A model generated the notes under the pieces. It ran no database searches. It had not been told where the DNA came from and saw only the letters and a list, made by a program, of their open reading frames with translations. Source: Asterias rubens (Eukaryota). Taken from it: DNA of 64,000 bases. Below, in pieces: positions 23,245-61,434 of the stretch. A program made the translations under genes and the position numbers. Each line of letters opens with the position of its first letter. Position 1 is the stretch's first letter. The stretch covers positions 4,278,001-4,342,000 of the forward strand of contig NC_047081.1 in NCBI RefSeq assembly GCF_902459465.1. The letters run 5' to 3'.

Positions 23245-26200
23245 ATGTCATCACCGGTTAAGAGGAATCTCGGACACAAGGGGAATGTCTCTCCAGACCG
23301 AGGGATTCCCGACCAAGGGACTGAGTATGCGGATCCTCACCAAGAGGTCATATATGCCACACCGGGTCTACCTAATGTCTACGATTCCCCTGAAAAAGGC
23401 AATGTTTATGCCACTCCAAGCCAGAGCCCCGTCCACAGTAGCAAGCCAGGCTCCCCTGCCATGGAGTGGGATGGTTACCAGACGCAGGTTTCTCGGGGGA
23501 CCGAGGGAAGTGATCGGTGGGACCGCACCCCACCTGAGATCCCGCAGTTTGATCTGGACTCTGAAGATCGGGATCCCGACTCAGATGATGATGGTAGAGA
23601 TGAGGCGATTAGTGGAAGTCACTGTTCCGCCTCGTGCCTGGTGTTCTGTCGGCCGTGCATGACTGAGCATAACCCTTTACCCAATAACCCATCGGTGTGC
23701 ACCCGGTTGAAACATTCACTGATGTGCCCACCCCATGGGAGAGTATCACGGGATGTGACGTTGGTTCTGTTTGTGTTGATGTCATGGGGTGTGGTGTGGG
23801 GTATGACAGGGGATGCGGCTCTGCCAGGGGGGAACTTCTTTGCATTGTATGTGTTGGTGATATGCTGCATGGTTGGAGGCATTTTGATCAAGCTTGTTCG
23901 ATTGCCAGCTCTATTAGGTATGTGTGAATGGTAGTAAGTATGTACTGAACCCTCGACTTTATAACACTTAATTGAGAGAACAAAACAAAATTGATTAAAA
24001 AGAAAAGAAACTTCAAATGGTAGTTACACTTGAATGGCTTCTGATTGGCATTCAAACAAAGAGATTTACTCTAACATTACGGCTGCATAGCTCAGTTGTT
24101 AGAGTGCTGGCACATTTAATCAGAAGTCGCAGGTTAAAAATCTGGGTGTAATGTCCGTGAATGGGTGAATCTTGGAACACTAGGTGGCAGCAGACTTACC
24201 AGACAAGATTCCATTGTTCTTTAGTTCTGATAATGTGCACATTAATAATGAATACTCTTGCTACCACCCTGTTCTTATAACTCCCCAATTGCAAATCATC
24301 AACAATAACATCCGTTGCCAAGTCAAAAGCATTTAAGATGTTAAATTTGCATTCAAGGATAAGGAATGTTAATTTTGGTTTTTACCCATACACCGATTTG
24401 TGTTAGCACTGTATACTCGATACTTTCCCAAGTCCTGTGAAAAAATATCACAGGCATATTACTCTTGAATTGCAAGGGTTTTGGGTTCGAATCCCATTCG
24501 AATAATATATAGTCAATAGCAGTTTATTTCCTTCCACTCAGGTATGCTCATTGTTGGCTTCATGCTCCGAAACATCCCCTACATCAATGTTGCAACACAC
24601 ATCGATAAGAACTGGTCTTCAGCTCTCCGCAGTGTCGCCCTGGTAGTGATCCTCCTAAGGGCGGGGCTTGGGCTAGACGCCAAAGCCTTGAAGAGTCTCA
24701 GCATGGTGTGCTTGAGGCTGTGCTGCACACCATGTTTAGTTGAGGCTTGTACTGTGGGCGTTGTGTCTCATTTTCTACTGGGCTTCCCATGGGCCTGGGG
24801 ATTTATGTTGGGGTGAGATTTAAGCCCGGTTCATACTTCCTGCGAATGCGAATGCGATACGAATGTTGACGTCACAAACTCACAACGAATTATTCGCAGC
24901 CGTTCAACTTTGTTCAACTCACTTGCGAATATCGCTGCAAAAGGAGGGTTGTGACGTCAAATTCACGTCAAATTCGCTTCGCATTCGCATTCGCAGGAAG
25001 TATGAACCGGGCTTTACTTTGTTGGCATATCACTACGAATTTAATGTAGAATTGTCCGTAACAGTACTTTTTATTGGACACTAATCCTTCAATTACATTA
25101 ATGGTCTCTTCGTAACAGTTTGAATCGCCCACTCTACTCAGAAAGACTTGCTCTCGTCTTCGTCGGTCTCTTGGTAAAACCAAGATGTGTCAGGTGTCAA
25201 TGGGCAAAACTGCGTCTGTTAGTCTCATGTGTTGATGATTTGGTGACATCCCAAACTTATCCAGCGGACCATTAAGGCAGTTTTAACTTAATAGTTCTTA
25301 TAAAATAGTGCTTTTTACACACACAAAAAAGGCATCATGTTATTTTTATGACTGGTATGCAGAGCTGTGTTTGAAATCTGAGACCCGTTGTATAGCACAT
25401 TGTAAGGGTTTACAATGTGGTGCAATATATAGTCAACCATACTGGAAACACAGTGGCAAACCCCTTTTATTTATTAGCTGACAGGGTTGGACTTTTAAGA
25501 GCATTACACATTCCGAAGGACAATGTGTCTTGCTCATGGATTCAAGTGCCTTGAATTGGAACCATACACATTTGGAAAACACCAGAACTTGATTCCAATG
25601 CCCTAGTAGACCGCCCAACCACGACACATTACAAAAAGTCACCTTTGCATTTTCCTGTATTTCAGTTTTGTTCTTGGAGCAGTCACTCCAGCTGTGATCG
25701 TCCCGTCCTTGCTGTCACTTCAGAACAGAGGGTATGGTGTCACAAAGGGTATCCCCACCCTGGTGATCGCTGCAGCTTCCTGTGATGATGTACTGGCCAT
25801 CAGTGCCTTCGGGGTTATCCTTGGTGCAGCTTTTGCAACAGGTAACAAATGACAATAATATTGCGTTCCCCATAGACACCAAGAGAGAAGAAATTATTAT
25901 ATATTTGCAGCTGCAGATATCTGCCATTGCCACGTCAAATTTGCTGTTCTTAATAGATCCAGGCCTAGGGTCTGTCAATTTGAGTGTCAAGTTGCATACA
26001 CCATGTATGCAAGTGTTATTTAATGGTTTGTGTCCAACCTGAAATGTGTATTGCACAGTAACACATTGTGGATCTGATTACCTGAATGGCGAACCAAGAT
26101 TGATCTTGGTTGATGACATCGGGTGAGTTAGGGTCAATGTGCCAAGTGTCTCTCCAACGAAGAAACGTCGGTTTGAGAGCGCATGTACAAGCACTGTTTC

Positions 26201-29200
26201 ACATTTCAAACAGTGTATCGACTCATATTCAGTAACAGAGAGGGTACACTTTTTGGCTCTAAGGAGAATTTAGCATCCAAAACCTCAAGAGCATAATTTA
26301 AACAGGTTTAGATAATCAACTGCCTGACCTTGCTCAAACACTGCTTTAATGGTGACCTGATACCTTGGGATCAGCAGTGTAGCATACTCCTGAGAGCGAG
26401 CAGAGTAAACTGTTGGAAACGTCCAGATCTGAGTGGCGCTTTTCAGAGCCAAAACTCAAAAGGATTTTATTTAAAAATATGTATAAATGGTTGTAGCTGC
26501 AAGTTGACTTGTCTTACACCCCTTTCAGACAGGCGCGCTAGAGTCGCGCCGAACCAAATAGATAAGGAGCGACTCTAGGTCGACCCAAATAAATTATGGT
26601 TTCAGAAGGGCAAACTTAACATAACATTTACATTGGCTCGGCTCATGCGCTCCAGAGTCATTCTGAACGACTACAACAGTAGATTTTTCAACTTCTAGCA
26701 AGTCCAGTCGTTCCTAACTGTTTCAGACGTCAAACTTTTTATGTACTTCAGAATTTGGTTTGGCACGACTCTTGAGCACCTGTCTGAAACATGTGTTACT
26801 TACTATCTATGCATGCCCTATGTGATTAATCCTTTCTTCCACTCCACCAGGTGACCTTGTCTACAACATATTTCGTGGGCCATTGGAGCTTGTAATTGGT
26901 GTTGCTTTTGGCTGTATATCTGGTGTTGTGTTATGGTACTTACCAGACAGGTTTCAGGTAACCACCCTTAGTGTAGGTTATGAATTCTTAGTATTTAGTC
27001 TGACGATGATGTGGTGGCTTGAAAGTGAGAACTTCAATATTTCAAGTTTGAAATTCTTGGGGACACTAGGCTTCAGCAGACTTGCCATGTAAATCCATGG
27101 GAATATTCTCAGACTTTGTTCTGAATGGAAAAATTACTTTCTTTATCTGTGTCTCAAAGTCTCCAATTGCTGTCCATTTTGAAAACACTTGTATGCCTCA
27201 GCACGTACTATGTCTTGAAACTTAATGCTTTGTAAGATATAACACAAAATCTGTGAAACTTTGAGCCGAACACAAAAAAAAAGAAGTTTGTTTTGCATAA
27301 ATTGGGTGCCACCTTGTCAAGTTTGATTCTTTGTCATAGAGTTTCTTAACCAGAAACTGCTGTATATTTTCCTTTCAAAAAATGTGTTGAGCAGTTGTTC
27401 TGCTCGCAGAAACTCTGTGCCCCTTTTCAGATCCAAATATTTTGCTTGGGCTCCAGCTTTAGGCTGTCCTGCCTCTTTGGAATCCCTTTAAAAATTGCAC
27501 ATTCTTTTAAATAACTGACCAACATTGGAAACCTAACCTTGAACTCAGAGCTGTGTATTTAGGTAGTTGCGACATGGAGGGACTAGATTTCTTAAGTCAC
27601 TAGGTTGCTGGATGCCATTTTTGGTCAAAATGCAACACAGCCCAATGGGGAGCCTGGTCTGGCACCCAATGTGCAAACATGCGTTCTTCAGACCAAAAAT
27701 TGATTCTAATCGCAAGTTAACTCTCTCGATAAACAGCTTTGCCAGAATCCAAGCCAAGGCTGTGGTTTTGAAAAAGGCCTGAGAAATTTTGCTCCGAGTC
27801 ATGCAATTTAATGAAAATAGTAAATGTTTACAAAGCAGTGTACCAATTCATTGTCATATTACGTACAATACATTGGTTTTGGCTGGTTCCATATTAATTT
27901 ACTCTGTTTAAATTAAACTTACATCTCTTTAGACGTCCTTTGTGATGAGACAAACTCTTTTGCTCGTTGGTGGCGGACTGTTTGCAGTCTTTGGGAGCTC
28001 AGCGTTGAAGTTTTCCGGAGCTGGAGCTCTTGGCTGTCTCACTATGGCATTTGTTGCTGGACATGGATGGAAAAAGCAAAGGGTATATTGTTTCGTCTCT
28101 GTTTTTTTGTTACCGGAATATAAAGAAGTGCAAGTGATCTGTTATATACAGGACTACTCCCTATAAGACTGTAAGCGAAAAATTAATGGTAAGCAGATTA
28201 TTTTGCGCTTATGTATAAGGGTGCGCTTATTTGTAAGGGTATTTCACAGAATAGGATTGTTTGGTGTGTTTGTTCATTTCAGGTCACTAAAACATTCCTA
28301 ACTCCCAGAAACTTTCCTGTAGTTGAGTAATGGTGACCGCAAGCACAATATACAGCAGTCAGTAGTTGTTTGAAATTGGGAAGAAAATGTTGCTCATTAA
28401 TTTGCCATCTAAGTAAAAATTAGCAGAGAACCGGCAGATAAAATTATAATAAGCATGATTATTGTGAAATGTAGTTACATGTAAGTGTAATAATGTTGAT
28501 TGAACTTGGTTTTTCTAGGAGCCAGTAGAGAAGTACATCGGATGGTTATGGCTGCTCTTTGAACCACTTCTGTTTGGATTAATTGGTGCAGAGGTGGACA
28601 TTAATTCCATTCAACCTGCGACTATTGGTGAGAAAAATGTCGCTGTTAAATCAAAGGTTTATCAAGTTTCAGAGTAAACTTTCAAATTTGTTAGGATCCA
28701 TTATAAAACAAAAGTCATATTTGTTGAATTGTAGGGAAAAGCAACCACTGTGATTGTGTAGGTGAAGTGTAAATGGGCCTTTCTTGCTAAGAAATTCTAC
28801 ACTTGCAACCATCGTTCTTTACTCTCACAGCTTTGTGCCCAATTCCTAATAAAGCTGTGGAAATAAAAAAGGGTAATCCTTTGTGGACAAGCATTTTTCA
28901 AATTTCATTGTATCAAGCGAAATACACAAATGTCAATATCTATTTTTGTCAACACTAATCAGCTATCAGAGTAGGTAATGACATGCTCAATGCTACTTGG
29001 TTTGATCGAACAATGGGAGACGTTTGCAATGCTAGGTGGCAGCAGACTTAACAGGTAAGGTAAATTCCCATTGTATCCATAGTTCTGAAAAAGCATGCAC
29101 ATTTCTAAGAGAAACAGATGTACCATAAGTCTGCTGCCACCTAGTGTCCCCATACTTTGTTTCCCATTCTTTGGCGAAGCGATAATGGACATTAGAAAAG

Positions 29201-31416
29201 AACCAGTACAACCATTAAGGGGATATATACACTTATGGCTTCACCTTGAAGAGTGGTTTGATTTTACCATGACAGGTCTTGGAATTGCTACACTATTCAT
29301 TGGTTTGTTCTTCAGGCTAATAGCCACCTTCCTAGCCGTCTGCAGAGCCAAGATGAACTTGAAAGAAAAGATATTCATCTCCCTCGCTTGGCTGCCTAAA
29401 GCAACTGTACAGGTGAGTTGGTTCAAACAAAACTTGTTGTAGGTGACAGAAAAGTTAGTGGTAAGTCTGATTCCGTTGGTGTTCATTTCAGGGTCTGCCC
29501 AAATCAATGCACTATGGTGATTGAATGCCTATTTGTATGGACTCTGATGAAAATAGTTATGCATGGCCTCATGCTTAGCCCAAAATAGGACTCGTCCTCT
29601 GTGCTGTACTAAATACACTGTAGTATAAAACAAAACTGAAAGGCGCCAAGGGCTAGCCTCGTGCTAAGAAATTGGTTACTTTAGGGAGGGGGGATATTTC
29701 CATCAAAAACAAGGCAAGTTATGAGCCTTTTCAAAACCAAGGTATGGGCTCCCTCTGCTTCGGCTTGGGTTCAATCATCCGTGCAGATGTTGCACAGTGC
29801 TTTATCATAAAACAGAGCCGGAGTCAAGATTTGGAAAAGGCCCTATGAGGTGGATTTTAAATGATTTAGTTTTTTTTACATTCCATAAAGAATATGTTCA
29901 AAGACAGTGGACACTATTGGTTATTGTCAAAGACCAGTCTTCTCACTTTGTGTATCTCAACATATGCATAAAATAACCAACCTGTGAAAATTTGAGCTTA
30001 ATTGGTCGTCGAAGTTGTGAGATAATAATGAAAGAAAAAACACCCTTGTTACACGAAGTTGTGTGCAATTAGATGGTTGATTTCGAAACCTCAAATTCTA
30101 AATCTGAGGTCTCGAAATCAAATCCGTGGAAAATTACTTCTTTCCCGAAAACTATGGCACTTCAGACGGAGCCGTTTCCCACAATGTTTTATACCATCAA
30201 TCTCTCCCCACTACTCGTTACCAAGTAAGGTTTTATGCTAATAATTATTTTGAGTAATTACCAATAGTGTCCACTGCCTTTAACAGCTACTCAATGGATT
30301 TGGTTCAGTACAAAAGTTTGTAGAAATCCTATTACAGTGAGTCGTTTCTGTTTTGTTGTGTTGACAGGCAGCGATTGGGCCAGTGGCTTTAGACACAGCT
30401 ATCAAGCATCAAGCTGGAGAAGAATTTGTACTGCTTGGAACACAAGTAAGTAACATTTACCCAATTCACCAAATATTCTCAGTTGTGCCATTTGCGAGCC
30501 AATGTCGCTGTGATGTTCTAAGTGTGCAGTTAGGCAGGGTTCACACGCGCACTTTGTACGTGTAACTGTTAAATTTGATATAAAAATTTGAGAGTGTGGC
30601 AGGCCGTGGCTGCATGCAACATTGGTGTTAGGGTTCAGTACAAAAGTTTGTTACCCAATGAAGATGTTTTTTGTCAGCTCTAGATGCCACCATTGCTCAG
30701 GTGGTACCGGGCGTGTGTGTTGTGCAAATTCTCAAAATTGGAGTTGTGCTATTTTGACTGATAATGTGTACACTATATGCTAGTACTCACTCGGTATATA
30801 ATATTTTCAAAATCTCGTAGTGCATGGTACAACCCACAGTGTTTAAATCAACTTAATCAACTTATTATGGGGAAGTCACCGGTAAGCTGAAGTGCATTGG
30901 AAACAGCTGTTAAGTCAAGTCAGAATTAAAAGACCTAAACTTTTTACATGCATAGCCTAGGGTAGCCTTTGACCCTTCACATTAAACAGGCACGCACATT
31001 TTTTGCAGAATTCCTTTTTGCTTGAATATTAGTGCTGTAGAAACTGTACAAAGTAAAAAGAGCTTGAGCACTGCCTCTTCTCTTTGGAATCGACAATGTT
31101 ACACATCTGATTATACATAACTTTGAATCACTCTTCTTACTCTGCTTGTTTTTAGCTTTTGACTGTTGCAGTACTGTCCATCCTTATCACTGCGCCTTTG
31201 GGGGCCATTGCCATAGCGATGACTGGTCCACGCCTCCTCAGTAAGACCGCAAACGAAAAACCTGTCAACAACAACAAGCGCAGAATCGAGATCCATCATA
31301 TAGGGTCACCCATAAGTGATGAGGTTGTGGAACTCTCCCCAGTGCACCCTGGACCGGAGCATTCCATTCTGCTGAGGAGGGGTGTTGAGGCTGGCATTAC
31401 TGATGATACGCTGTAA
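23245..31416 (+). CDS. SLC9B2-like: SLC9B/NHA-family Na+(Li+)/H+ antiporter, paralog A (canonical DD motif), 9 coding exons, 653 aa
   Basis: Exons 23245-23917, 24542-24812, 25666-25841, 26851-26957, 27933-28082, 28519-28627, 29276-29412, 30368-30445, 31156-31416. GT-AG, phases consistent, 1962 nt. Family motifs: CPPHG, LPALLGMLIVGF, GFVLGAVTPAVIVP, GIPTLVIAAASCDDVLAIS (DD at 25784-25789), FEPLLFGLIGAEV, WLPKATVQAAIG, SILITAPLGA. Orthology to vertebrate SLC9B1 versus SLC9B2 is not resolvable here. Confidence 0.95.
24823..25013. mobile_element. Tourist/Harbinger-like MITE, TSD TTA
   Basis: TIRs of about 35 bp beginning AGCCCGGTTCATACTTCCTGCGAATGCGAATGCGA, with TTA at 24820-22 and 25014-16. Confidence 0.9.
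26517..26795. mobile_element. Tourist/Harbinger-like MITE, TSD TTA
   Basis: Imperfect TIRs of about 40 bp (CACCCCTTTCAGACAGG.. / ..CCTGTCTGAAACATGTG) with TTA on both flanks. Confidence 0.75.
29012..29163. mobile_element. MITE with CTAGGTGGCAGCAGACTTA inverted repeats (CTCF-core-like)
   Basis: Perfect 19-bp inverted pair at 29032-29050 and 29126-29144. A second, more decayed copy starts near 24161 (motif at 24177-24199). Outer boundaries are approximate. Confidence 0.7.
29723..29843. mobile_element. Tourist-like MITE (GGCCC family), TSD TAT
   Basis: TAT|GAGCCTTTTCAAAACC ... GATTTGGAAAAGGCCC|TAT. Confidence 0.7.
29902..30279. mobile_element. Kolobok-like MITE family A copy
   Basis: AGACAGTGGACACTATTGG ... 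CCAATAGTGTCCACTGCCT|TTAA, with the same interior as the other copies. Confidence 0.9.
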
Positions 31417-36657: not shown

Positions 36658-39600
36658 ATGGGAGGCAACATTGTGTCCAAATCCTACAAGACGGCAAAAC
36701 GATCCGACCTTGAAGTCACCAATGTTGAAGATTACTCCGACCTCCGGAACGAGAAGAGCTCCTTTGACCAAACTCAGAATGCAACTGGCATCATCTCACC
36801 AGACACCAGCATTCCCTTGGAGGAGAATAGAGCAGATGATACCATGAGTGACAGTGAAGAGAATGCGCCCTGGCATGGCCTGCCGATGGGAATAAACGAA
36901 CATGGCAGTTTCACCGTCATCAACATTGACAATAATTCCTATCCAAATCACATTCCGGTTAAACCCACGCAGGAAAAAGACAATAAATGCTGTGTTGGAC
37001 TCCGTGAACGGTGTAAAATGGGGTGGAGGCCGTGCCTCACCAAATACAATCCCTTGTCTGAGTATCCGTCCAGACGAGCGAGTGTGAAATACGCCTGCAT
37101 GTGCCCGCCCCACGGAGTTCTTGCTAGGGTGGTTCTTATTATGGTGATTTTACTGCTGTTGTGGGCGATACTTTGGTCCATCACAGGGGCGGAGTCGTTG
37201 CCAGGAGGGAACCTTTTTGCCCTTTATATTCTTGTGGTGGTTGCTGCTATCGGCGGGATGATCGTTGAGTTCTTTCATCTACCAGCTTTGTTAGGTAAAC
37301 AAATAAATGTTTTTACTCCCTCTTCTTGAAAGAGTTTGTTTTACAAAGTTTTCAACAATTACTTGGAATGCATTCAAACAAACCCAGCCATGCAACCTTT
37401 TAGCTGATTTCCTTGTTCTTTAGGTCTCTCAGCTGTGTCAGTACAAAATGTTAAACACATTTCAAATTCTTGCTGTGCCTGGAACTTTCCTCTTTTCTGA
37501 CAAGTTGCAGTGTATGGCTGTAAACCAGACTTTTACAGTCTGTAAATTATTAAAGGCAAGGCGGTTTTATCTCAGTAAAGGGCATCATTTCTGCTGGAAA
37601 TTCTACTAGGGCACAAAGGCAATAACCTATTTCACTGTCACCGCCGGGGGACTTCCCACCATAGCCTCATGTTTTAAGTTTAAGAAATAATTCTGAATGA
37701 AGGCTTTTACCTGATAAAAAAGGTTCATTAGAATGTTACGGTGGACACTATTGGTAATTATTCAAAATAATTATTAGCATAAAACCTTACTTGGTGACGA
37801 GTAATGGGGAGCGGTTGATAGTATAAACCATTGTGAGAAACAGCTCCCTCTGAATTGAGGTAGTTTTCGAGAAAGAAGTAATTTTCCACGAATTTGATTT
37901 CAAGACCTCAGAATTAGAATTTGAGTTTCCGAAATCAAGCATCTGAAAACTGACACAACTTTGTGTGACAAGGGTGTTTTTCTTTCATTATCATCTCGCA
38001 ACTTTGATGACCGATTGAGCTCAAATTTTCACAGGTTTGTTATTTTACGCATGTATGTTGAGATACACCAAGTGAGAAGACTGGTCTTTGGCAGTTACCA
38101 ATAGTGTCGAGTGTCTATAACATGACAGGTGTAAAAAAGGTCACTTTAAAGTTAAACCTGCCCCATAATTTTTGGTTTAATGAAGATTGTAAAAAGGTGA
38201 AAAGCAAGATACAGGTAGGGAGTTTTACAGCAGTACAATATGTTTACATTAGGGAAAGGCTCCCATGAGGGAAAGGCTCCCAGAATATCTCATGTGGAAC
38301 AACCAGTGAAGCGATTCGGATGAGATGTGGTATACACTGCCAGCAAAATGTTGTATAGATGGTATGGTACAACCAATGGGAGACCTTGTGCTTTCATACC
38401 AGGCAAATTTTTAACCCTCAGAAAAAAAAGGAATTTTGTTGCTAAATAGTCTGAAAGTCTATCAAAGCTTTAAATGTACAAATAGGTCAGGCCTTGCACA
38501 TTCCCCATTTTTCCCAGGGTCCAAGTAAAAAGCCTGACATACCATGAAGGTACCTGTAGAGGAGGTTTGCTTATCAGGCTTTGTCCTTGAAAGGGCATGG
38601 GCACCAAGGCATTTTTTCTCCTTGGTACCCTATGAGGAAAATGGAAATGTCTACTGTGAGCATTTCAAGGGCACCAAGGCAAGTATCAGCCCTGGCTTGT
38701 AATGAACAGGGGGTTTGATATTATTATTTGGTATTGTCAAATTAAAGCCATTGGAAACTTTCTGAACAGAACAAAAATTCCAAGTTCACAGATTTACAAA
38801 TAACTTACAGGGTTTACAGAAGGTATTGGTGAAAGACTTCCCTTGAAATAGTATTCCATTATATACTATTATTACTTTTTGAGAAAATATTAAAAACAAA
38901 TATCAATTCTCGATATTGAGAATCACAGATTTATTTAAACACATGTCATGACACGGCGAATCTTGCGGAAACAAGAGTGTAATTTTCCGTTATTTTCTCA
39001 TGACTCTGATGACCGATTGAGCCTAAATTTTCACAGGTTTGTTATTTTGTATATAAGTTTGATACACGAAGTGTGGGCCTTTGGACAATACTATTTACCG
39101 ATTGCTTTAAAGTTCTTTTCTCCTTCCCTTATTTTTTATTTAGGTATGCTCATAGTTGGCTTCATGCTCAAGAATGTTTCTCGTATACAAATTGCTGATG
39201 ACATTGATCCTGGCTGGGCCTCAGCACTACGCAATATTGCCTTAGCTGTTATCTTGATCAAGGCAGGTCTCGGAATAGACGCTGGAGCTCTTCGTAAACT
39301 CAGTCTAGTGTGTGCTCGTCTGGCACTGGTGCCATGTATAATGGAAGCAGTGACAGTCGCTGTGGCTGCGCATCTATTGCTGGGTTTTGGCTGGGATTGG
39401 GCATTTATGCTTGGGTAAGCATTAGCGCTTTTATCTGGTTGGAACTCATGTTAAAAGTTTACTTGAAAGAAGACTATCATAGGTTTTCTAAGACCCCCTT
39501 CCTACTGGACCCCGATTTGATCTCCCAATTTCGAAAGGATGATCAAAGGGCAATCAACAAAAAACAGGTTTTGTGGGAACGCGAGGGCCATCAAGATCTG

Positions 39601-42600
39601 ACCGTGCAATTTTTGTCCTCTTCGGGAGTAGGATTAAAGCGGGATCTGATCGCCCTTGTGGATTAATGGGCGATCAAAAGTCGTGTGGGAACGCAAAGGG
39701 CGATCAGACCCCGCAATTTGCAAGCAAACCAGTGTTCTTTTGAACCCACTTCTGTTCCCAAAAAGGGGGATCAATGCGCGATCATACTCAAGTGGGAACG
39801 CGACTGCGACTTCACGCCTGCAACTAATCTTGTTGCGGGATCCAGATCTCGCAATCGTGGATCCAGTGGGAACGCGGTCTAACGTGTCTGTACAACTTTT
39901 AAGTTTAAAAACTATGACGATGAAAGTACCCAGCCCTTAATCTTGATTCCTTCCATAAACAAAGTCCAAAATGGACATACGAACTGTTGGCTCAAATTTC
40001 CGTGGTATATAATCTCTGATCCCATATAAAGCATGATTAGTTTACTGTAGGCAACAGATTCAAACAAAATATTCTTGGCTTTCATCGATTGGTGGATGGT
40101 TAAGGTTACGGAAAATAAATGTTTTTTGTTATAAAACTTAATTTAATTAAAACTTTTTTGTCTCTCTTCCAGGTTTGTCATAGCGGCTGTTTCTCCAGCC
40201 GTCGTTGTGCCATCTGTCCTGGAGTTACAAGAGAAAGGATATGGGATCAGTAAGGGTATCCCAACATTGATTGTAGCCTCGGCAAGCTGTGAGAATGTGT
40301 TTGCAATAGCAGCGTTTGGAATTCCACTTGGTATTGCGTTCTCTGGTGGTAAGTTGACATTGAGATATGGGAGTGTATGTTTGCTTGGTTGGCTCTGTGG
40401 TGACAATGGATGGACAATTATTGAATGACTATAGAAACAAGTATTTGGTTTGCAGTAACACCATGTGTGTATCTACTTGCTAGGTAGAGTTTGTTCTTTA
40501 AAGAACTGGCTTTCTATATTCTACTACCGCAGAGTAGATTTATCGGAGTGTGCGGGAGACATCTCAGTTCTGAAAAGAACTATCCGGCCGTCGATTTCAC
40601 AAAGAGTTAGGACTCGTCTTATCTTGAGTTAGGAAGAGTAACTCGTCCTAACTTGGGATTAATCTTAAGGTCTGCATGCTACAGTGCAGGGTTGGGACTC
40701 GTCCTAAGTTTAATCTTAAGTTAGGACGAGTTTTGTGAAATCAACGGCTGCTTTTTAACTACTACCTGGGCGGAAGGTATAGAAAAATGGCTGGGACTAC
40801 TTTAGCCTATAGGATCGTTATTAACTGCGCTACCGCGGAGTGAGGTCTCTCATTGGTCTCAACGTTTCGACGAGCTTGCTCTAGTCATGGTCAGGAGATT
40901 GTAGAAACAGTTACTATGTCTCATGGTAAGCTTTTACGTTGTTGGAAAAGAGATGGTGTACACCCAAACACAATTCTGAATGAATGTGTATGTCACAATG
41001 GTACCTGGGTTTGCTCATCTGCTATACAAACCAGAACCGTTTCACACAGCAACTGTCTCTATAGTCTGAGGAATTCAAATTTAGGCGGTACATTGTGATT
41101 AAGCAAGTCATTGTACCAAACCTAACAAATCAAATTTAAGTCTCAAATGGCTTCTTAAAACTACACAATACATGTATTGTATTTGCAAATTTGTGAGTGT
41201 TTGTGACTAGATGTTACTACTATTGGTTTTACCTGTAGGTTATATAGACATTGACAATGAAGGACAAGACAACAGCACAAATATACCCATGGATAGCAGC
41301 AATGATGGTAAGATCTTTTTAAAGACAGTAGACACTATTGGTAATTGTCAAAGACCAGTCTTCTCACTTAATGTATCTCAACATATATGCACAAAATAAC
41401 AAACCTGTGAAAATTTGAGCTCAATCGGTCATCGAAGTTGCGAGATAATAATGAAAGAAAAAACACCCTTGTCACATGAAGTTGTGTGCTTTCTTATGCT
41501 TGATTTCGAGACCTCAAATTCTAAACTTGAGAACTCGAAATCAAACCATCTAAACGCACACAACTTCGTGTGACAAGGGTTATTTTTCTTTCATTATTAT
41601 CTCGCAAGTTCGATGACCGATTGAGCTCAAATTTTCACAGGTTTGTTATTTTATGCATATGTTGAGATACACCAACTGTGAAGGCTAGTCTTTGACAATT
41701 ACCAATAGTGGCCAGTGTCTTTAAGATACAGCAACTGTGAAGGCTAGTCTTTGACAATTGCCAATAGTGTCCACTGCCTTTAAAGAAACTCTAACATAGG
41801 GCTAGATATCTCAGTCAGTTGGTAGAGCACTGGTGCAGTATCCGGTGGTCATTGGTTCAGTCCTCGCTTTAGTCATACTATTTTTGTCCGACATCTATTA
41901 TTCTCAGAAATGTGAGCATACCAAGATTGATGTACAATAGCAAGAGTTGGCCCCTCCTAAGAAATATGCTAATTATTCATGCATGCTTACAGACACCATT
42001 GGTTGGCAAACGCCATCCACAAATGCATGCGATCAGGCCTGATGCTCAGGGGCAACGGCACCAAGGCATTTTCTCCTTGCTAAAGGGCACTTCAATGAAG
42101 TTGTAAATTTCTATTGTAACAAATCAAGGGGCATGAAGGCAATGAACTGGGGCACTGGAGGAAATTATGATGCAGTGTCTTGCTCAAGGACACAAGCGCC
42201 TTTACTGGGACCTGAACCCACACTTTCACAACACTACAACTTGAGCTTGGTGCACTTGACTGCTTTCCCGAAATACTACCACTAATGGAGTTCTGTATTG
42301 GAATTTCAAAAAGCTTCAAACCATGAACCTTACTGTATGTATTATGGGCTTTTGTTTTCATGGATTAGTTAATTGCAAACTTTTAGGTAATAATTCCAAA
42401 GGTACGTAGGATGTTAATATGAACTTCAGTGACACAAACTCTTGCAACTTTAATTTGTTCTCAGATACGGGTATGTTGGTGTTTAACATCTTCCGTGCAC
42501 CCATAGAGCTACTGCTGGGTGTGGTCTTTGGGTGTGTTGGGGGCGTGTTCCTCTGGTATTTTCCAGACAAAGACCAGGTATTTACTAACTTGTATTGAGT

Positions 42601-45600
42601 GGTGTGTATAGGGCTCTACATCCATGAGAAGTGTGTAAACTCAATTAGACATTCTCCATAAAGTCATACTTGCTGGAAGTGACAACTTTATAGGTGTATT
42701 TATATATGTAGGCATATGAACCAAGAATAGCTAAAACTTGAAAATGCTAGGTGTTTCTTCACCCTAAGGCGAGAAATACACATTGTTCAAAGTGTGTTAA
42801 AGATACATGTGTAGTTAATTGTTTCAACTGTGTTTGTTAAAGCTCAATTTGTATTTACAGTTATTTTTCATTTCTCAGTACATCATTTCACACAAGAGCT
42901 TTTGTAAGACCAAAAAGAAGACCACATAAATATTCCTAAAACCTTATTTAAATAAACTTTATCTAATCTTGCAAGAACTCATACGCCCTTTTTGAAACCT
43001 TGGCTTCAGGCTCCGTCCTCTTGTCTGAAGCCCAGAGCGCGTATTCAATCTAGCCTGAGTTGAATCTAAAGCGAAGCCATGGTTTCGAAAAGGGCCATAG
43101 TTTTGTTCAGCACTATTTACTTGTTTGCTTTCAATTTGTCTTTCATGATTAAGTATCACGTTTGCACAATTTCACTATACTTTTAATGACAGAAATCCTT
43201 GATGTGGAAGCGTACTTTACTGGTCTGTGGTGGAGGTTTGTTATTATTGTTCGGTGGTGCCAAGGCGGACTTCACAGGGGCTGGTGCTCTAGGCTGCCTC
43301 ATTCTAGCTTTTGTAGCTGCCCAGGGCTGGGGTAGAGGAAAGGTAAACCTAACTGTATTTAAAGAGAGGGATACATTCGATAATCACTCTTAAAAGTTTT
43401 GGCAATAAACATTTACTTGGCTATAGAAGTGCAGCAGCTTTATGCAGTATAATTGCTCAAATGTTAACATTTTTATGAAGGTTTTTTTTTTTTAATGTTG
43501 TACTTTTTACACTAAATTATTGCCTTTTAATGTGAGATTGTTGATATGTTAAGATGTATTTGACCCTTTCAGCTACTGGTCGTTTTGTTTGTATATATAC
43601 CAATTATAAAGCATTTTGAGTGTCATATCACTATGGAGTTTTGGAAAAGGTTTACATATTTATTCAAACAACATTTTACCTGAGAAGGGGCTCCTGTTTG
43701 TCAAATTTGTGCAGCATTTAAGGGTACAAATGTGAGCCATCAAACTTTAAATTTGGATTCTACACCCACTGATTATCAGTTGCAGAGATGAGACCAAAGG
43801 TTGACTCGAGTCCAGTTAGCTTTAAATCTGGCTTGAAAAATTACTAAAGTTGGTAACCATTTTTCACCTGATCAATAAGCAAATTAGGTCTCCGATTTTA
43901 ACAGAGTTGTGTCTAATGTTTTTTTTTTTACCACTGATACCAGTGATCATATAATGTTAAAACAATCTACCACAAAGTTGCAACCAAACACTCTTCTTAC
44001 TTCACAACAGAAACTCATCTTTAAGGTCAGATAAAAATGTCCTCAAAAAACCAACTCTTACATCTGTCAAACTATTCTGAAATATGAAAGACTTTACATC
44101 CCATCTTAATTGTTTCTTCTGTCAGGAACCTGTTAAAAAGGTTGTTGGATTAATCTGGAAGTTGTTTGAACCAATCCTATTTGGTCTCATAGGAGCGGCA
44201 GTATCAGTTGAATATCTGGATGACACTGTGGGTAAGTAACAAGCTGTCCATTTCACCAAACTTATCCTAACCTGGGATTAATCTTAGGACTTAAAGACAG
44301 GTTCAGTTCCGTATCAAAATTCGTAGGCCGCATTTAACCAAAGTTAGCGAGTTACTCGTCCTAACTCGAGTTAGGATTAATCCTGGCGTTTCGTGAAATC
44401 GGCTGAAGGTTTCTCAAAGAAATATCTGAGCCGCAAAAGGAAACTATTCTACATGTATTAGATTGTGTCAGTAATGGTGGCTATGGCTAGGGCTTCTGCA
44501 CAATCTGTTTTCAGAGTGATCATTAAAACATCTTTTGTTACATTTACAAATATTACCATACCCATGTTACAATTGTCATCAAATGATATCCATAAAATCT
44601 TTTACTCCTTGTATCACATAACCTTTCATACGGGTTTGTGGGGTTCATGGTATGTCATGGCCAAGCCAATAAGAGCACCAAACTCAAGCTCTGGTGTTTG
44701 TGGTCAGCAGAGTGTGGGTGCCAGTCCTAGTTGTGACAGTTGAACCAGTAGCCATTATTGCTGTATCCTTGGGATGGGACGTTAAGTTGTTGGTCCAGTG
44801 TGTTGTGTAATGCACGAAAAGGAGCCCAGTGCACTTAATGTAAAGAGAAGGGGTTCACTCTGGTGTTCCTGGTTCGAACATGGGTCACGGTGGCTTATGC
44901 AGAAAGTTGGGTGTTGTGCACACAACCTATGATTTTACCATTGGCATTGGGTATTCAGGTTGGCTAGTGGTTTCTTCCCTGCCTTTCAACTGTGTGGACC
45001 CTGGTTCGAATCCCAAAGGCGGATTTCAGTCCAAATCAGTTTGGGTTTTCCTTCAACATCTAAACCTGAGATGTCCTCAGCATCTTCTTCCCACTGGTAT
45101 CTTCAGGCCTGTGGTTTACAGTGCGAGGTACTTTAGAGGATTCCTTGATTTCTTTATCAGATTAAAAACAAAATACTAATAACAAGCAGTTGCTATTTAG
45201 GGTTTACATTAAGTGCAGACAAAAACTGACAACGGTGGCCTTGATTTCATGAAGATACATCTCCTGATCTCCTGAACTGATTACTTATTCAATTATTTTC
45301 TCAGGTCTTGGCATAGCTATAATGGCAATAGGCCTTGCTGTACGGACTGCAGTCACAATGCTGGTCGTCTGTAAAGCAGGACTCAATCTCAAGGAAAAGG
45401 TGTTTGCTGCCCTCTCTTGGTTCCCAAAGGCCACTGTGCAGGTAAATCACAAGTAATTAGGTGTTCGGCTTTTAGCCGAAAACCTATTGTTATTGTTAAG
45501 TTTTTGTTTTGTTTTTGTTTTTTTCTCCGTCTTCTTCTTCTGCCTGAACGTTCTCCGCCAATTTTGAGAAAAACTGAAACTTGTATGAACTTGAAACTTC

Positions 45601-48600
45601 TCATGAACATCAACCTCGGTGAGTAGACGGCACCGCAACTTTTTTGGAATGGTGACGTCATTGATGACGTCATTACGTTAAATAAACGTGAAATAAACCT
45701 TAAATAATTAGAAAAATCATATCTTCAAAACCAAAAGAGCTACGTTCAAGATTCTTTTTTTACATAAAACCTCTTATAAAGATCTACAAATGCGGTGCAC
45801 AACGTGACCCCATTTGACCTTTACTTCCGGTCGAAACCGGAAGTTAAAGTAACAAATCATGTTATTTTGGGCTCTAGAGCCTAAGTGAATAAAAATATGA
45901 AAAAATGTCCAATGCATAAAATTTTTTTAAACTCAAGAGCATTCTAAAAATATAATGTGTGACGTCATAGCTACGTCACAACGAAAATGGTACACGAGGT
46001 CGAAAAAAAAATTATTTTGCTATCTCAAAAAATACAGCATGTACGGACTTGAAACTTACCACGTACTTAGACCAAAGCGTGTATATGACAAAGAACAAAA
46101 TTTGGAATGATGACGTCATCGATGACGTCATTATATTAAATTGAAGTTTTTTATTAAAATACTCATATCTCCAGAATCAGATATGCTACATACGTGATCT
46201 TTACACCATATGAAAGGTCATGAAGTATTAAACAAATCTTACACAGGGTGTGACCCCATTTGACCTTTACTTCCGGTCGAAACCGGAAGTAGTAGTTTGT
46301 TTTATAAAAAATCGTATCTGAATAATATTATTTTGTGTATTAATATAATAACTTAATTTTAAGGCCCTTCGACGATTCTACAAATGTTTACAATGTGTGA
46401 CCTCATTTGACCTTCATTTCCGGTCGAACCCGGAAGTATAAGTTTGTACATACAAAATTGTGTATCTTATTAATGAAACGTGGTACATTAATAATCATTA
46501 CATCAATTTTGAGCTCTCTGGCAATTCTATATGTTTTGCACAAAGTGTGACCCCATTTGACCTTTAAATCCTGTCAAACCGGAAGCTGAAGTTTAATATG
46601 ACAAACCTTCATTTCTCCGTCTTCTTCTGCCTGAACGTTCTCCGCCAATTTTGAGAAAAACTGAAACTTGTATGAACTTGAAACTTCTCATGAACATCAA
46701 CCTCGGTGAGTAGACGGCACCGCAACTTTTTTGGAATGGTGACGTCATTACGTTAAATAAACGTTAAATAAACCTTAAATAATTTGAAAAATCATATCTT
46801 CAAAACCAAAAGAGCTACGTTCAAGATTCTTTTTGTACATGAAACCTCTTATAAAGATCTACAAATGCGGTGCACAACGTGATAAAACGCTTAGAAAAAA
46901 GGTTATTTAATAGCTATTCACTTTGTTTTCACAATAACACACAACATAGCTCACTATCTCCCCAGTCAACTAAACTTAAAAAGTGATGGCTCGTTAATTC
47001 AGGCCAGAAATCCGAACACCTCGAATTTGTTATCAAACAAATTCTTATGTCTAGTTGTATCTATACATGTTACAAAGTTTACTGGTAACTATTCACAAAC
47101 ATCAGAGGGCATTTCTAGCCTTGAGTTTCATCTTTGAAGTGACAAGGCAATGTTCTTGCAAGGGTCACTTTTCGTAAATCCAACCTGTCAAAGCCAATGT
47201 TGTTGTTGACCATAACGTAGTAAGGTATAAAGCTAAATTGTATTCAAACTTTGAATCCCTTGTTGCCGAGCATAAGGGCCCCTCCCAAATCCTTCTTGCA
47301 CCATAGAGGAATCTACCTTACTTGTAAAGGCAAGCATCCCAGCCTTGCTTTCTCCTGTAGATGACCAGCGCATTGAAACATTGAGTTGTCATACCACTGT
47401 TCTTTCCAGAAACCTACATACAACTCAAGGGAGATTCATAATGGTTCTCACACAACCCTTAGATATTGTTAGGTCTGGGAGAGACATCTAAATATTTACT
47501 GTCATATTTCACCATGTGAAAGAAAGTTTATTTGGACAGTTTTTTGTTTGTAACTTATATGTTTACAGGCTGCCATTGGCCCTCTGGCATGGGAGGTGGC
47601 AATAAACAAGAACGCTGGATATGTAGCAGAGCAGAATGGGATCAAGGTAATTTTATCAAATTTGTATCATTATTGCTTCAGGGATAAACAATAGTTGTCA
47701 GGTTGGCGTAGTTGGTATCTTTCGTTGCCTTCCACCTCTGGAACACTGGTTCAAATCCCACCGGGGGCACTATGTGGATTGGGGTTTCAGTCCCTACTTG
47801 ACGGTGTGGCTTTTCCCTGGAAATAAGTCTCTCGGGTTTTCCTCCCCTGTCTAAAACTAAACCAATATTTCTTCATCATGGCTCTAATTAGAAAATTGAG
47901 AATTATTTATCCAGATCCAGAATTAAAAATTAAACATGCTGTAATTATAAAAAGTTCCATTAATTTCTTCTCCAGCAACAAGGAAACCAAAAAGCTCCTT
48001 GAAATCCGTAACTCCAGAGTTACTTGTATACTTAAAATACCATCATTTCAACATGCCTCCTAAGATCTGGACCCAAATTTCAGCATTTTGTGTCATCATC
48101 CACTCTAACCCCTTGAAAAAGAACCCAGTGCACCTAGGTTAAGAGAACGAGATTGCCCCAGAGTTTCTGGCATGTTGGCTACAGCTTGCACCAGAAGCTT
48201 TTTAACTCTTACAAGGTGCTATTCAAAGGGTCTCATAATTCAACATAGCTCTGTATACCTGTTACAAAAGGGTTTGTTATTCAGGCCTGGAATTTCATCT
48301 TTAAAAGGACAAGGCCATTTTCATTTTGCAAAGGGCACTTCCATTGGAAAATCTAAAAGTCTATGGGAAACATTTGAAGGGGCATCAAGGCCAGGACCAG
48401 GGGCAATGAAGGCCACTGGATCAATGGCCTGAGTGTAACTCCAGGCCTGGTAGTTTGTATCTTATTCTGAATGTTATTTCCATTCCTTCCTTATGTAGAT
48501 CCTCACCCTAGCAGTCCTCTCCATCATTCTCACTGCACCCATCGGTGCAATCATGATTGCTCTTGGAGGGCCGAGGCTCCTTCAGAAATCCCAAGAAGGC

Positions 48601-48735
48601 AACACAGACAAACTTCCCATACCTGAAGTGACTGTAGTTTCTCCTGAGGGTGTAGAGGAGGAGGAGGAGGAAAGGATTCAGGAAGAGGTACCAAAGGAGG
48701 CTAAAGGACAGGGAGAATCATCATCAATGCTGTAG
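36658..48735 (+). CDS. SLC9B2-like: SLC9B/NHA-family transporter, paralog B (EN in place of DD; one extra exon), 10 coding exons, 657 aa
   Basis: Exons 36658-37294, 39144-39414, 40173-40348, 41239-41307, 42465-42577, 43193-43342, 44126-44231, 45305-45441, 47569-47646, 48499-48735. GT-AG, phases consistent, 1974 nt, no frameshift or internal stop. Intron positions match paralog A, with shared exon sizes of 271, 176, 150, 137 and 78 nt. Motifs: CPPHG, GFVIAAVSPAVVVP, GIPTLIVASASCENVFAIA, WFPKATVQAAIG. The start ATG is inferred, because the frame is open back to the acceptor at 36617. Confidence 0.93.
37738..38116. mobile_element. Kolobok-like MITE family A copy (reverse orientation)
   Basis: Reverse complement of the 29902-30279 interior, with degenerate ends. 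Confidence 0.8.
38746..39106. mobile_element. Kolobok-like MITE family B copy, ending 37 nt before the paralog B exon at 39144
   Basis: TTAA|AGCCATTGGAAACTTTC ... GCT|TTAA. The interior aligns with 14940-15301 and the right TIR is partly deleted. Confidence 0.8.
39491..39880. mobile_element. Decayed Harbinger-like MITE with GTGGGAACG internal repeats
   Basis: The left end AGACCCCCTTCCTACTGGACCCCGATT aligns with the reverse complement of the right end AATCGTGGATCCAGTGGGAACGCGGTCT. Confidence 0.65.
40490..40900 (-). mobile_element. Penelope-like retroelement terminal remnant with a decayed minimal hammerhead ribozyme, interrupted by a Harbinger-like MITE (40588-40747)
   Basis: Minus strand 40898-40857 reads TCTC-CTGACCA-T-GACTAG-AGCAAG-CTCGTC-GAAACGTT-GAGA. 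The MITE has CGTCGATTTCACAAAG / TTTTGTGAAATCAACGG ends. The left boundary is approximate. Confidence 0.55.
41239..41307 (+). CDS. Paralog-B-specific 69-nt symmetric (phase 1-1) exon encoding GYIDIDNEGQDNSTNIPMDSSND
   Basis: Acceptor ttttacctgtAG, donor G|GTAAGA, open in the required frame, and length divisible by 3. I saw no counterpart in the equivalent intron of paralog A (25842-26850). Confidence 0.7.
41323..41779. mobile_element. Fully palindromic chimeric family A MITE (41323-41720) plus a duplicated terminus (41725-41779)
   Basis: Left arm, then the internal hairpin, then the reverse complement of a left arm; TTAA at 41319, 41721 and 41780. Confidence 0.85.
42984..43096. mobile_element. 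Tourist-like MITE (GGCCC family), TSD ATA
   Basis: ATA|CGCCCTTTTTGAAACC ... GGTTTCGAAAAGGGCC|ATA. Confidence 0.75.
45457..47054 (+). mobile_element. Non-autonomous Helentron/Helitron2-like element (HINE/DINE-1 architecture), about 1.6 kb, in a paralog B intron
   Basis: The 5' end has AGGTGTTCGGCT-TTT-AGCCGAAAACCT (a stem-loop) followed by ATTGTTATTGTT. The interior is periodic at about 150 bp. The 3' end has subterminal CCGAACACCT (47012-21, reverse complement of the 5' motif), hairpin GAATTTGTT-ATCA-AACAAATTC (47023-44), then CTAG|T. Confidence 0.75.
47699..47860 (+). mobile_element. tRNA-derived SINE (family C)
   Basis: A-box-like TGGCGTAGTTGG, B-box GGTTCAAATCC and body GGGTTTTCCTCCC. 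Related copies at about 44955-45070 and 61690-61930 (minus). Confidence 0.65.
48282..48449. repeat. Dispersed CAGGCCTG-ended repeat family (hAT-like MITE?)
   Basis: Related copies lie at about 14350-14500 (reverse), 38575-38700, 42034-42160 and 49624-49780, sharing blocks such as GGCACCAAGGCATTTTCTCCTTG and AAAGGGCAC. No clear TSD. Confidence 0.6.
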
Positions 48736-59655: not shown

Positions 59656-61434
59656 TTACTCATTGCAGTAGATTTGAACTGATTCATCAGTAGCCACAAC
59701 CAGATCACCAGCTGGTGTGATTGTAATACCATAGGGATAGGCACACCCCTTAACGATGCATCCAATGTACACTCCATCATATCTGTAATGTTGAATCTCA
59801 CTCGGTAATGGGTCTTTATCCCATATACATGTACCAACAAAGATGCTACCATCCTTGTCACAACACAACCCACAAGGCAACATGTTATGATTGATATCTA
59901 CTGAAAATACAATGTGACTATTGTAGTCCATTGATTCTAACTTCTTGTCTTGCCTCTTGGTGTAGATGAGTTGCTGTTTGTGGATAGTCAAGTATTTACC
60001 AATCCCTGAAGCGGGCAGTGTTGTGATGATGGATCCATTTTGTCTGAGTAGAGAGATCTGTCCCTGGCTATCATATCCGACAGCTATGACATTATTGTCA
60101 TCTACTGCTATACATGATGGCTGGATGGCTGGCTGTCCACCCAGAGTGAACTGATGGAGACACTTATACTTTCGATTGAAGATCTTAACTGCAGTGTCAT
60201 CTACAACAATGAGCTCATCATTCTTGTTCACAGTCACTTTCCTTGGATTAATGAGACCTTCAATTGGCATCTCTTTTGGGGTGACCTTGGATTGAGATGC
60301 AGATACTTTGATCAAGGTTCTGTCCTTTAAATCAAAGACAACAACCTCACCATTGCAGTAAGAAGCAACCTCCAATGCACAGATGTTTTTCATCTGTTTA
60401 TATCTGTTCTTATAACTTGTTATTTCTTTTTTCATTTTCCATGTCTCCTGTGTCAGGTTTGTCTGAAGTTTGCACGGTGTTGCTGAAGCAGAAGTTGCTC
60501 CTTCTAGTTTCTGGTCTTCTTTTATTCTCAATCTCCCAAGTGATTTCTGATCATCTTCAAAGTCAATGTAAGCCAGGTCATGATGCACTCGTTTGGGTTG
60601 TACATCTGTGTAGTCTTTGAGATCTTGTAAACGTTTCTCTATCAGGTGTAGATTTTCACAAAAGTTAAATTTTATACACATGTTGTGATTAACTATAACG
60701 TTCATATTCTGCGCTTTTTTCATATCATTGTTATTTGCGGTTCGTGCTGTTTCCATTTCTTTGGCTTTGTCTTCATAAGTCCTGTCTAATTCTACCATCA
60801 ATTTGTTCTCTTCATCTTTGATCCTTGCAGTCTCCTCAGCAATCTTCTCAACTGCCTTCTTGGAGATCTTTGCTTTGGTAGCCTTAAAGCAATCCTCTAA
60901 CAGCTCCCGAGACCTACCTATGTCTACTATAGCAGTCTTGAAACTATTGTGATGCTGTCCCACTGCTGCTAATATTTCATCCGCTTTCTTCTTGCAGTTG
61001 TCTAAAACCTCATTCAGCTCAGTGGTATGATGTTTTCTGTGGTCCTTTGCAATGCACAATGTACATATCAACTGTTTGCATGGGTCACAATACATGATAA
61101 CATCCTTGTCCGTATGCTTGCTACATTTAGAAACGGACCCCTGACTTGGTGGTTGAACCTCTTGTTCTGTTTCGTTCAACATAGAAGTCATTTTCAAGTC
61201 AGTTGGTAGATCAGCAACTCCTCCAATAAGTAAAGTTTCTCCACGACACACTGGGCATTATTAGTTTTGGACGATGTGGGTATTGTCTGCAAAATGTTGA
61301 AGGCATTCCAGACAAAATGAATGAGAACACTCCAGCATCTTGGGCTCCTTGAAGCGGTCCTTGCAGATTGGACATTCAAGATGTCTATGGCTGATCATTT
61401 GTAAGACTGACTCAGCTGTGATTCTTTCAGCTAT
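59656..61434 (-). pseudogene. TRIM-NHL-like gene (C3HC4 RING, B-box2, coiled coil, NHL-like propeller), single coding exon, RING interrupted by TAA-TAA; pseudogene, null allele or RING-less variant
   Basis: ORFs 61461-61261 and 61251-59656 are in the same frame, separated by TAA TAA TGC CCA. The RING reads CPIC...CSHSFCLEC LQHFADNTHIVQN**CPVC, with all 8 ligands present. The B-box CSKHTDKDVIMYCDPCKQLICTLCIAKDHRKH is intact. NHL-like repeats include PRKVTVNKNDELIVVD, PSCIAVDDNNVIAVG, PCGLCCDKDGSIFVG and PYGITITPAGDLVVAT. A splice acceptor (tttaatttccAG) precedes 61469. The probable ancestral start is ATA at 61434 (AAG ATA GCT). Confidence 0.85.

Follow-up and report, generated by a model that had tools for sequence, protein, structure and literature searches.

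Paralog B of a tandem pair of SLC9B/NHA-type genes in the starfish Asterias rubens is a transcribed gene under purifying selection in which glutamate and asparagine (E-N) stand in place of the two adjacent aspartates (DD) of the family's ion site. We favour, at a probability of roughly 0.55, the reading that its product is a working exchanger in which Glu343 would be the sole titratable group and Asn344 a neutral ligand. The pair lies in a 64,000-nucleotide (nt) stretch of contig NC_047081.1 (positions 4,278,001 to 4,342,000, forward strand; hereafter the window, whose own numbering is used throughout). The E-N codons, GAG AAT (40291–40296, +), fall in coding exon 3 of paralog B (176 nt; 40173–40348, +), which has an AG acceptor and a GT donor and encodes the end of transmembrane helix 5 (TM5), the loop between TM5 and TM6, and TM6 itself, which bears the E-N site. 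The exon reads in frame ...IVASASCENVFAIAAFG..., and its single-frame translation of 58 residues terminates ...IVASASCENVFAIAAFGIPLGIAFSG. The matching exon of paralog A (25666–25841) reads ...AAASCDDVLAISAFG... and carries the canonical DD motif, GAT GAT (Asp355-Asp356; 25784–25789, +), the motif codons of the two genes differing at two neighbouring bases. Using phmmer against sequences from the Protein Data Bank, we aligned exon 3 of B to residues 238–295 of human and bison NHA2 (7b4l, 7p1i) without a gap (E = 6e-16 and 2e-14). The E-N of B falls precisely on the D278-D279 pair of human NHA2, CPA-motif positions 6 and 7. Since the alignment is gapless and GAG AAT is in frame, the original prediction of EN in B and DD in A, differing by two adjacent nucleotides, is right as written. 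The DD motif in TM6 (D278-D279), one of the marks of an SLC9B/NHA protein, is absent from B, which has E343-N344.

The two genes appear as colinear exon sets on the plus strand in a six-frame self-comparison of the window. The coding region of paralog B (36658–48735, +) has ten exons, at 36658–37294, 39144–39414, 40173–40348, 41239–41307, 42465–42577, 43193–43342, 44126–44231, 45305–45441, 47569–47646 and 48499–48735. Every intron is GT-AG, and the spliced coding sequence (CDS) of 1974 nt encodes 657 amino acids with no stop and no frameshift, as had been claimed; the translation is identical to an Asterias rubens RefSeq protein named 'sodium/hydrogen exchanger 9B2-like' (P0171, 657 amino acids). 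Paralog A (23245–31416, +), a canonical DD-type NHA, has nine exons, at 23245–23917, 24542–24812, 25666–25841, 26851–26957, 27933–28082, 28519–28627, 29276–29412, 30368–30445 and 31156–31416, and its translation is identical to another Asterias rubens RefSeq protein of the same name (P0152, 653 amino acids). Both match PF00999 (Na_H_Exchanger), B with 73 bits against a cutoff of 26.2 over residues 194–593. The genes are same-strand neighbours with a common exon plan, exon 3 being 176 nt in both, and are 48.8% identical. A differs from B in its D-D, in a Thr at the position of S245 (human NHA2 numbering, as for the site residues below), in having nine exons and no insert exon, and in reading LIGAEV and GPVALD where B reads LIGAAV and GPLAWE. 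Both of these motif differences had been noted from the window alone and hold, as does the retention in B of IMEAV (the E215 equivalent), GLAVRT (R432) and PKATVQ (K460/T462), so that B stands, as described, as an intact SLC9B/NHA gene in tandem with its paralog A and with E-N at the DD position. B is already in RefSeq under a generic name; it adds a variant to a family already known and does not stand for a new type of system. At exon 2 of B, transcript contigs align from 39140 while the protein-exact exon starts at 39144, probably a 4-nt junction ambiguity rather than an alternative acceptor.

Transcription was read from Logan contigs of three runs labelled RNA by guess, in which spliced contigs show processed transcripts. 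Exon-exon junctions of B are present in contigs of all three. One contig runs straight from exon 2 into exon 3, without differences in the latter (X1 record 1), another joins the exons at 43193 and 44126 (X1 record 6), and a third, of 1920 nt and from a second organism (X3 record 15), covers exons 2, 3 and 6. Between exons 3 and 6 the last has 182 nt, equal to exon 4 plus exon 5; in exon 3 it shows four differences, each at a third codon position, with GAGAAT untouched. GAGAAT is thus intact in spliced transcript contigs from two organisms. Among the coding differences listed in B for close relatives, which are the best-supported ones and give partial counts, 10 of 12 in X3 and 14 of 17 in X7 are synonymous.

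To estimate selection, we threaded the A and B orthologs of Acanthaster planci and Patiria miniata exactly onto the genomic loci of each species and so rebuilt their CDSs. Between these two species the ratio of nonsynonymous to synonymous substitution rates (dN/dS) is 0.10 for B (dN 0.105, dS 1.02) and 0.09–0.12 for A. Comparisons with Asterias, where dS is saturated, give 0.07–0.09 for B, whose overall range is 0.07–0.11. The motif codons themselves have been synonymously replaced, being GAG AAT in Asterias and GAA AAC in Acanthaster and Patiria. The original prediction presupposed a transcribed gene under constraint, and both the spliced contigs and a ratio of about 0.10, similar to that of A and not near 1, agree with it. 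An origin of the E-N codons in faulty assembly or sequencing, or the decay of B as a pseudogene, is so improbable that we rejected both: the CDS is identical to the RefSeq protein over an intact ten-exon frame, GAGAAT occurs in independent spliced contigs, the E-N residues recur in three other genomes and one metagenome, and dN/dS is 0.10. Of the signs of a pseudogene that were looked for in B (a disrupted frame, a lack of introns or transcription, a dN/dS near 1), none was found.

Our next concern is how widely the altered site occurs. When exon 3 was used, without a profile, to scan 1.8 billion representative proteins, the best 150 matches comprised 119 with D-D and 18 with D-N, the remaining motifs being D-A, D-V, N-D and E-N. 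In full-length searches, the B orthologs of starfish (Asterias, Acanthaster and Patiria) read SASCENVFAIA and that of the brittle star Amphiura filiformis SASCENVYAIS, while the orthologs of sea urchins (Diadema, S. purpuratus and L. pictus), sea cucumbers (Apostichopus and Holothuria) and crinoids (Antedon and Anneissia) have D-N. An ophiuroid-like Tara metagenome fragment of 95 amino acids, 91.5% identical to the Amphiura exon, also encodes E-N by GAG AAT. The proposed comparison of orthologs across echinoderms therefore gives E-N in all starfish and brittle-star B sequences sampled and D-N in the other classes. The D-N orthologs (S. purpuratus P0186, Apostichopus P0184, Antedon P0033) share with B the second-position Asn, A234, L370 and the other site residues, and fall in the same clade; they differ from starfish B in having Asp at the first position and in lacking a loop insert specific to starfish.

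In a tree of 69 proteins made with IQ-TREE, all echinoderm D-N and E-N genes form one clade (Shimodaira–Hasegawa-like approximate likelihood ratio test, SH-aLRT, 98), and a separate echinoderm D-D clade contains paralog A (SH-aLRT 95). With the two motif columns removed, a 43-protein tree recovers the B clade with an ultrafast bootstrap (UFBoot) of 82 and an SH-aLRT of 97. Inside it are crinoids with D-N, Asterozoa with E-N (89/80) and Echinozoa with D-N (97/97). The A clade (99/96) groups A with DD genes of all echinoderm classes. B sits among animal 'exchanger 9B2' proteins within metazoan SLC9B, in an echinoderm clade that groups with the DD clade of echinoderms and with one of cnidarians. 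The tandem order, A then B, is also found in Acanthaster, and in Patiria the two orthologs are about 56 kb apart on one scaffold. Because the internal order of the B clade matches the accepted class tree, the A/B duplication predates crown echinoderms, and the split is older than the divergence of the living classes. That divergence took place about half a billion years ago. By parsimony, D-N is the ancestral state of the B clade, and the change from Asp to Glu (one transversion, GAY to GAR) arose on the asterozoan stem. The second-position Asn is invariant in every B-clade member sampled. What the original prediction missed is that the Asn is ancestral to an echinoderm-wide paralog and that only the Asp-to-Glu change is specific to starfish and brittle stars. 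We had also considered E-N as a recent oddity of starfish, which the tree and the orthologs rule out by placing it in an echinoderm-wide clade.

The rest of the ion site is conserved. The B clade keeps E215, V244, S245, P246, R432, W457, K460 and T462, the sole departure being V244L in two sea cucumbers, and the NHA2 structure paper places these positions at the ion site and at the points where TM5 (V244 and S245) and TM12 (W457, K460 and T462) are broken (PMC8850199). In B itself, the NHA pair of TM4 Glu and TM11 Arg and the equivalents of Lys460 and Thr462 are E280, R521, K549 and T551, which are kept in 11 of 11 B-clade proteins. Only three differences, G234A, D279N and M370L, are fixed between the B clade on one side and A plus chordate NHA2 on the other; the asterozoan-specific changes in the transmembrane core include D278E and the nearby L241I. 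Modelled with AlphaFold from an alignment of 60 sequences, B has a predicted local distance difference test score (pLDDT) above 90 in the core and of about 95 on the E-N helix. In this model a continuous helix (residues 332–360) bears E343 and N344, and the helix breaks lie at 308–310 and 545–550. Compared by Foldseek with the NHA2 structures 7b4l and 7p1j, the model gives a template-modelling score of 0.90–0.92 and a root-mean-square deviation of 2.5–3.2 Å, and thus has an NHA2-type predicted fold in which unwound TM5 and TM12 cross within the core.

The nearest characterised relatives of B are mammalian NHA2/SLC9B2 (7b4l, 7p1i-k) and NHA1/SLC9B1, with 47% identity and a phmmer E-value of 1.8e-128 over residues 72–528. 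B resembles NHA2 in the E215-R432 pair, S245, W457, K460 and T462, in PF00999 and in its predicted fold, and departs from it in having E-N for D278-D279, a 23-residue starfish-only loop after TM6, Lys and Ala at the equivalents of bison Arg176 and Glu406, and a long low-confidence N-terminal tail of about 110 residues. The conservation of the site bears on whether B transports at all. B might be a pseudo-transporter that moves nothing and is retained for a regulatory or structural role beside a partner, such as A in a heterodimer. This would accord with NHA proteins being obligate dimers whose function needs dimerisation (PMC8850199), with the adjacency of A and B, an arrangement kept in Acanthaster, and with the inactivation of bacterial NhaA by a single change at either Asp. 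We nevertheless regard it as unlikely, as the ion-site residues, the invariant Asn and a carboxylate at position 6 have been kept across five echinoderm classes at the dN/dS of the active paralog, which would be unexpected of a dead protein.

Echinoderms are one of several lineages in which the second Asp has gone. On the tree, independent losses are seen in octocorals (E-N), a sea anemone (D-N), the acorn worm Ptychodera (D-N, in a young duplicate), a gastropod clade (D-A), springtails (D-N), a trematode (E-N) and Lingula (N-A), and some mollusc and beetle paralogs have a CPA1-like N-D (beetles P0367, P0369, P0373 and P0377). Among 396 NHA-type sequences, a sample biased by the way it was collected, the motif is DD in 330, DN in 31, DA in 12, EN in nine, ND in eight, DV in three, and ED, YN and NA in one each. 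All but two of these (394/396) have at least one carboxylate in the pair. Further non-canonical NHA sites were seen in molluscs (P0085, P0251 and P0254), and the Lingula N-A protein (P0271) has no carboxylate in the pair. A second column near the motif was also noted: Ser339 of B (window about 40279–40281) lies at the human NHA2 A274 column, CPA-motif position 5, one helical turn before the motif. Of nine lineages in which the second Asp was lost independently, four have Ser or Thr in this column (echinoderm B, octocoral E-N, Ptychodera D-N and the trematode), as does only one of the 44 tree sequences in which that Asp remains. An independent-pairs sign test of this co-substitution is not significant, with about three of seven pairs going the same way and none the opposite way (p about 0.25). 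The original prediction also ascribes D-N to Drosophila NHA1; a homolog search seeded with a springtail D-N protein returned no D. melanogaster entry.

Lineages drop one carboxylate and almost never both, and B is constrained like its DD neighbour; for these reasons we favour a working exchanger. In the history that we propose, the second Asp of the ion site became Asn in a paralog lineage split from the canonical DD-type gene (A). The first Asp was kept in crinoids, urchins and sea cucumbers (D-N) and gave way to Glu on the stem of starfish and brittle stars (E-N). In the mechanism that we propose, B would still be an elevator-type cation/proton exchanger, with Glu343 as its single titratable carboxylate and Asn344 as a neutral ligand. 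Exchange may then be electroneutral, with a pKa, affinity or selectivity shifted relative to paralog A.

On this mechanism the site of B would mirror the N-D site found in CPA1 exchangers, which run electroneutrally with one carboxylate (PMC6181914). Like NHE1, NHE9, PaNhaP and MjNhaP1, B has one carboxylate and one Asn at two adjacent transmembrane positions, but in reversed order: position 7 holds the carboxylate in CPA1, position 6 in B. CPA1 proteins also pair a Glu at motif position 5 with an Arg at position 8, whereas B has Ser at position 5 and the NHA-type E215-R432 pair, and identity between B and CPA1 exchangers is only 15–18%. Judged by the CPA1 definition of Glu at position 5, Arg at position 8 and Asn-Asp at positions 6 and 7 (PMC6181914), B is not a CPA1 member.

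The nearest experimental proxy comes from human NHA1, in which the single mutants D258N and D259N each kept about 75–90% of Na+ transport and only the double Asn mutant, which lost about 60%, was strongly impaired (PMC13672361). The same 2026 structure paper proposes partly compensatory roles of the two aspartates (PMC13672361). D259N is like the natural variants in being a D-N site in an SLC9B protein that keeps most of its Na+ transport (PMC13672361); it is unlike B in being an artificial point mutant in a mammalian background, assayed with a dye in cells, and no first-position Glu was among the mutants. The original prediction had gone on from the E-N site to a loss of classical Na+/H+ antiport in B. 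That step is not supported: it was made by reasoning from the motif, and the activity kept by D258N and D259N (PMC13672361) weakens it.

Several points weigh against a working exchanger. In CPA antiporters the second Asp, at motif position 7, is viewed as the carrier of both ion and proton, and EcNhaA with Glu in place of the first Asp (position 6) is inactive (PMC6181914). The NHA2 paper describes the Asp pair as strictly conserved, and the only mutant of the pair tried there, the double mutant D277C-D278C, was dead (PMC8850199). The figures for the NHA1 single mutants derive from one dye assay in cells, on a different protein. In bison NHA2, Arg176 and Glu406 form a salt bridge between TM3 and TM10, and Arg176Ala failed to complement. 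Starfish B is without an equivalent of this bridge, as the Arg176 equivalent is Lys (residue about 222, in MLKNV) and the Glu406 equivalent is the Ala of LIGAAV (residues about 494–500, in the region 47569–47646), which is LIGAEV in A. The Glu406 equivalent has been lost three separate times in the B clade (in the starfish, Diadema and Apostichopus genes only) and never in the A clade. Finally, without the motif columns the B clade is moderately supported (UFBoot 82).

The loss of the position 7 Asp, the universal ion and proton carrier, with no reversion in the clade, is also what one would expect if the site had been re-purposed. B would then be a transporter with a changed substrate or coupling: H+-coupled Cl- transport, K+ or NH4+ in place of Na+, or an uncoupled leak. 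Reviews report H+/Cl- cotransport by Drosophila Nha1 in oocytes and K+/H+ antiport by Tribolium NHA1, from which it follows that NHA paralogs differ in modality, although the Drosophila result is itself called preliminary. An E214-R431 swap in NHA2 altered cation specificity, which shows that the site is tunable; yet no positive charge has been gained near the site of B, where E215, R432 and K460 are unchanged, and human NHA1 D259N still transports Na+. A changed mode is therefore a minority possibility in our assessment, behind the single-carboxylate exchanger, though less doubtful than a dead partner.

No paper in the searchable literature mentions a D-N or E-N NHA or discusses SLC9B motifs of echinoderms, in keeping with the earlier remark that no E-N type NHA is known to have been characterised. 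Adjacent aspartates have been treated as the invariant core of NHA/CPA2 antiporters, and here E-N and D-N have been kept by selection in echinoderms. Because B is intact, transcribed, strongly selected and part of an old echinoderm-wide lineage, it offers a natural test of the number of acidic residues that the site needs. Such variants amount to constructs already vetted by evolution for asking whether one carboxylate can run the transport cycle, to which the human NHA1 mutagenesis suggests a positive answer. They also bear on how the position and length of the carboxylate relate to pKa, ion selectivity and electrogenicity, and on the role of duplicated NHAs in marine invertebrates. If B is an ordinary exchanger, the rule of a strictly conserved DD will have to be relaxed; otherwise B points to a new mode of transport. 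More tentatively, echinoderm B may form a distinct CPA2 class together with NHAs in which D-N, E-N, D-A or D-V arose independently, those of octocorals, a sea anemone, an acorn worm, gastropods, springtails and a trematode. Its members would have one carboxylate, at the first motif position, and a stoichiometry, pH set-point or substrate unlike those of DD-type proteins. We hold this broader grouping to be possible but well short of probable; if true, it would overturn the view of the second Asp as indispensable in the superfamily.

The starfish loop insert is encoded by exon 4 of B (69 nt; 41239–41307, +), which appears in the RefSeq model and in X3 record 15 and adds an acidic, Asn-rich insert of 23 residues to the loop after TM6. 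Only starfish have this exon, which measures 69 nt in Asterias, 93 nt in Acanthaster (L003 14790–14882) and 96 nt in Patiria (L004 14572–14667), and the loop of 23–32 residues is acidic and Asn/Ser-rich across all three. Paralog A lacks it, as do the brittle star and the remaining echinoderm classes. In the model of B these residues form a low-confidence coil (pLDDT about 57). A high-copy repeat begins about 12 nt past the exon 4 donor, outside the exon. We considered whether the exon is an artefact derived from a repeat and ruled this out, since it is part of the RefSeq model and of transcripts and is conserved across three starfish.

Introns 3 and 4 of B (40282–42250) contain very high-copy interspersed repeats, with a summed contig word depth of 10^5 to 10^7 in all four runs and many rearranged joints. 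The repeat has a sharp edge at about 41319, 12 nt beyond the exon 4 donor, and a 59-bp unit is repeated twice at 41665–41783. Related copies lie at about 18.9–19.6, 29.7–30.3, 37.8–38.1, 51.0–51.2, 59.3–59.6 and 62.4–62.8 kb of the window. Intron 8 of B contains a duplicated segment of a few hundred bases (45375–45881 and 46597–46907), the copies being about 93–97% identical at the six-frame level. Elsewhere in the window, an unbroken open frame of 531 amino acids on the minus strand (59656–61251) contains a B-box zinc finger (E = 7e-8), matches an NHL repeat faintly and looks like an intronless TRIM-like gene.

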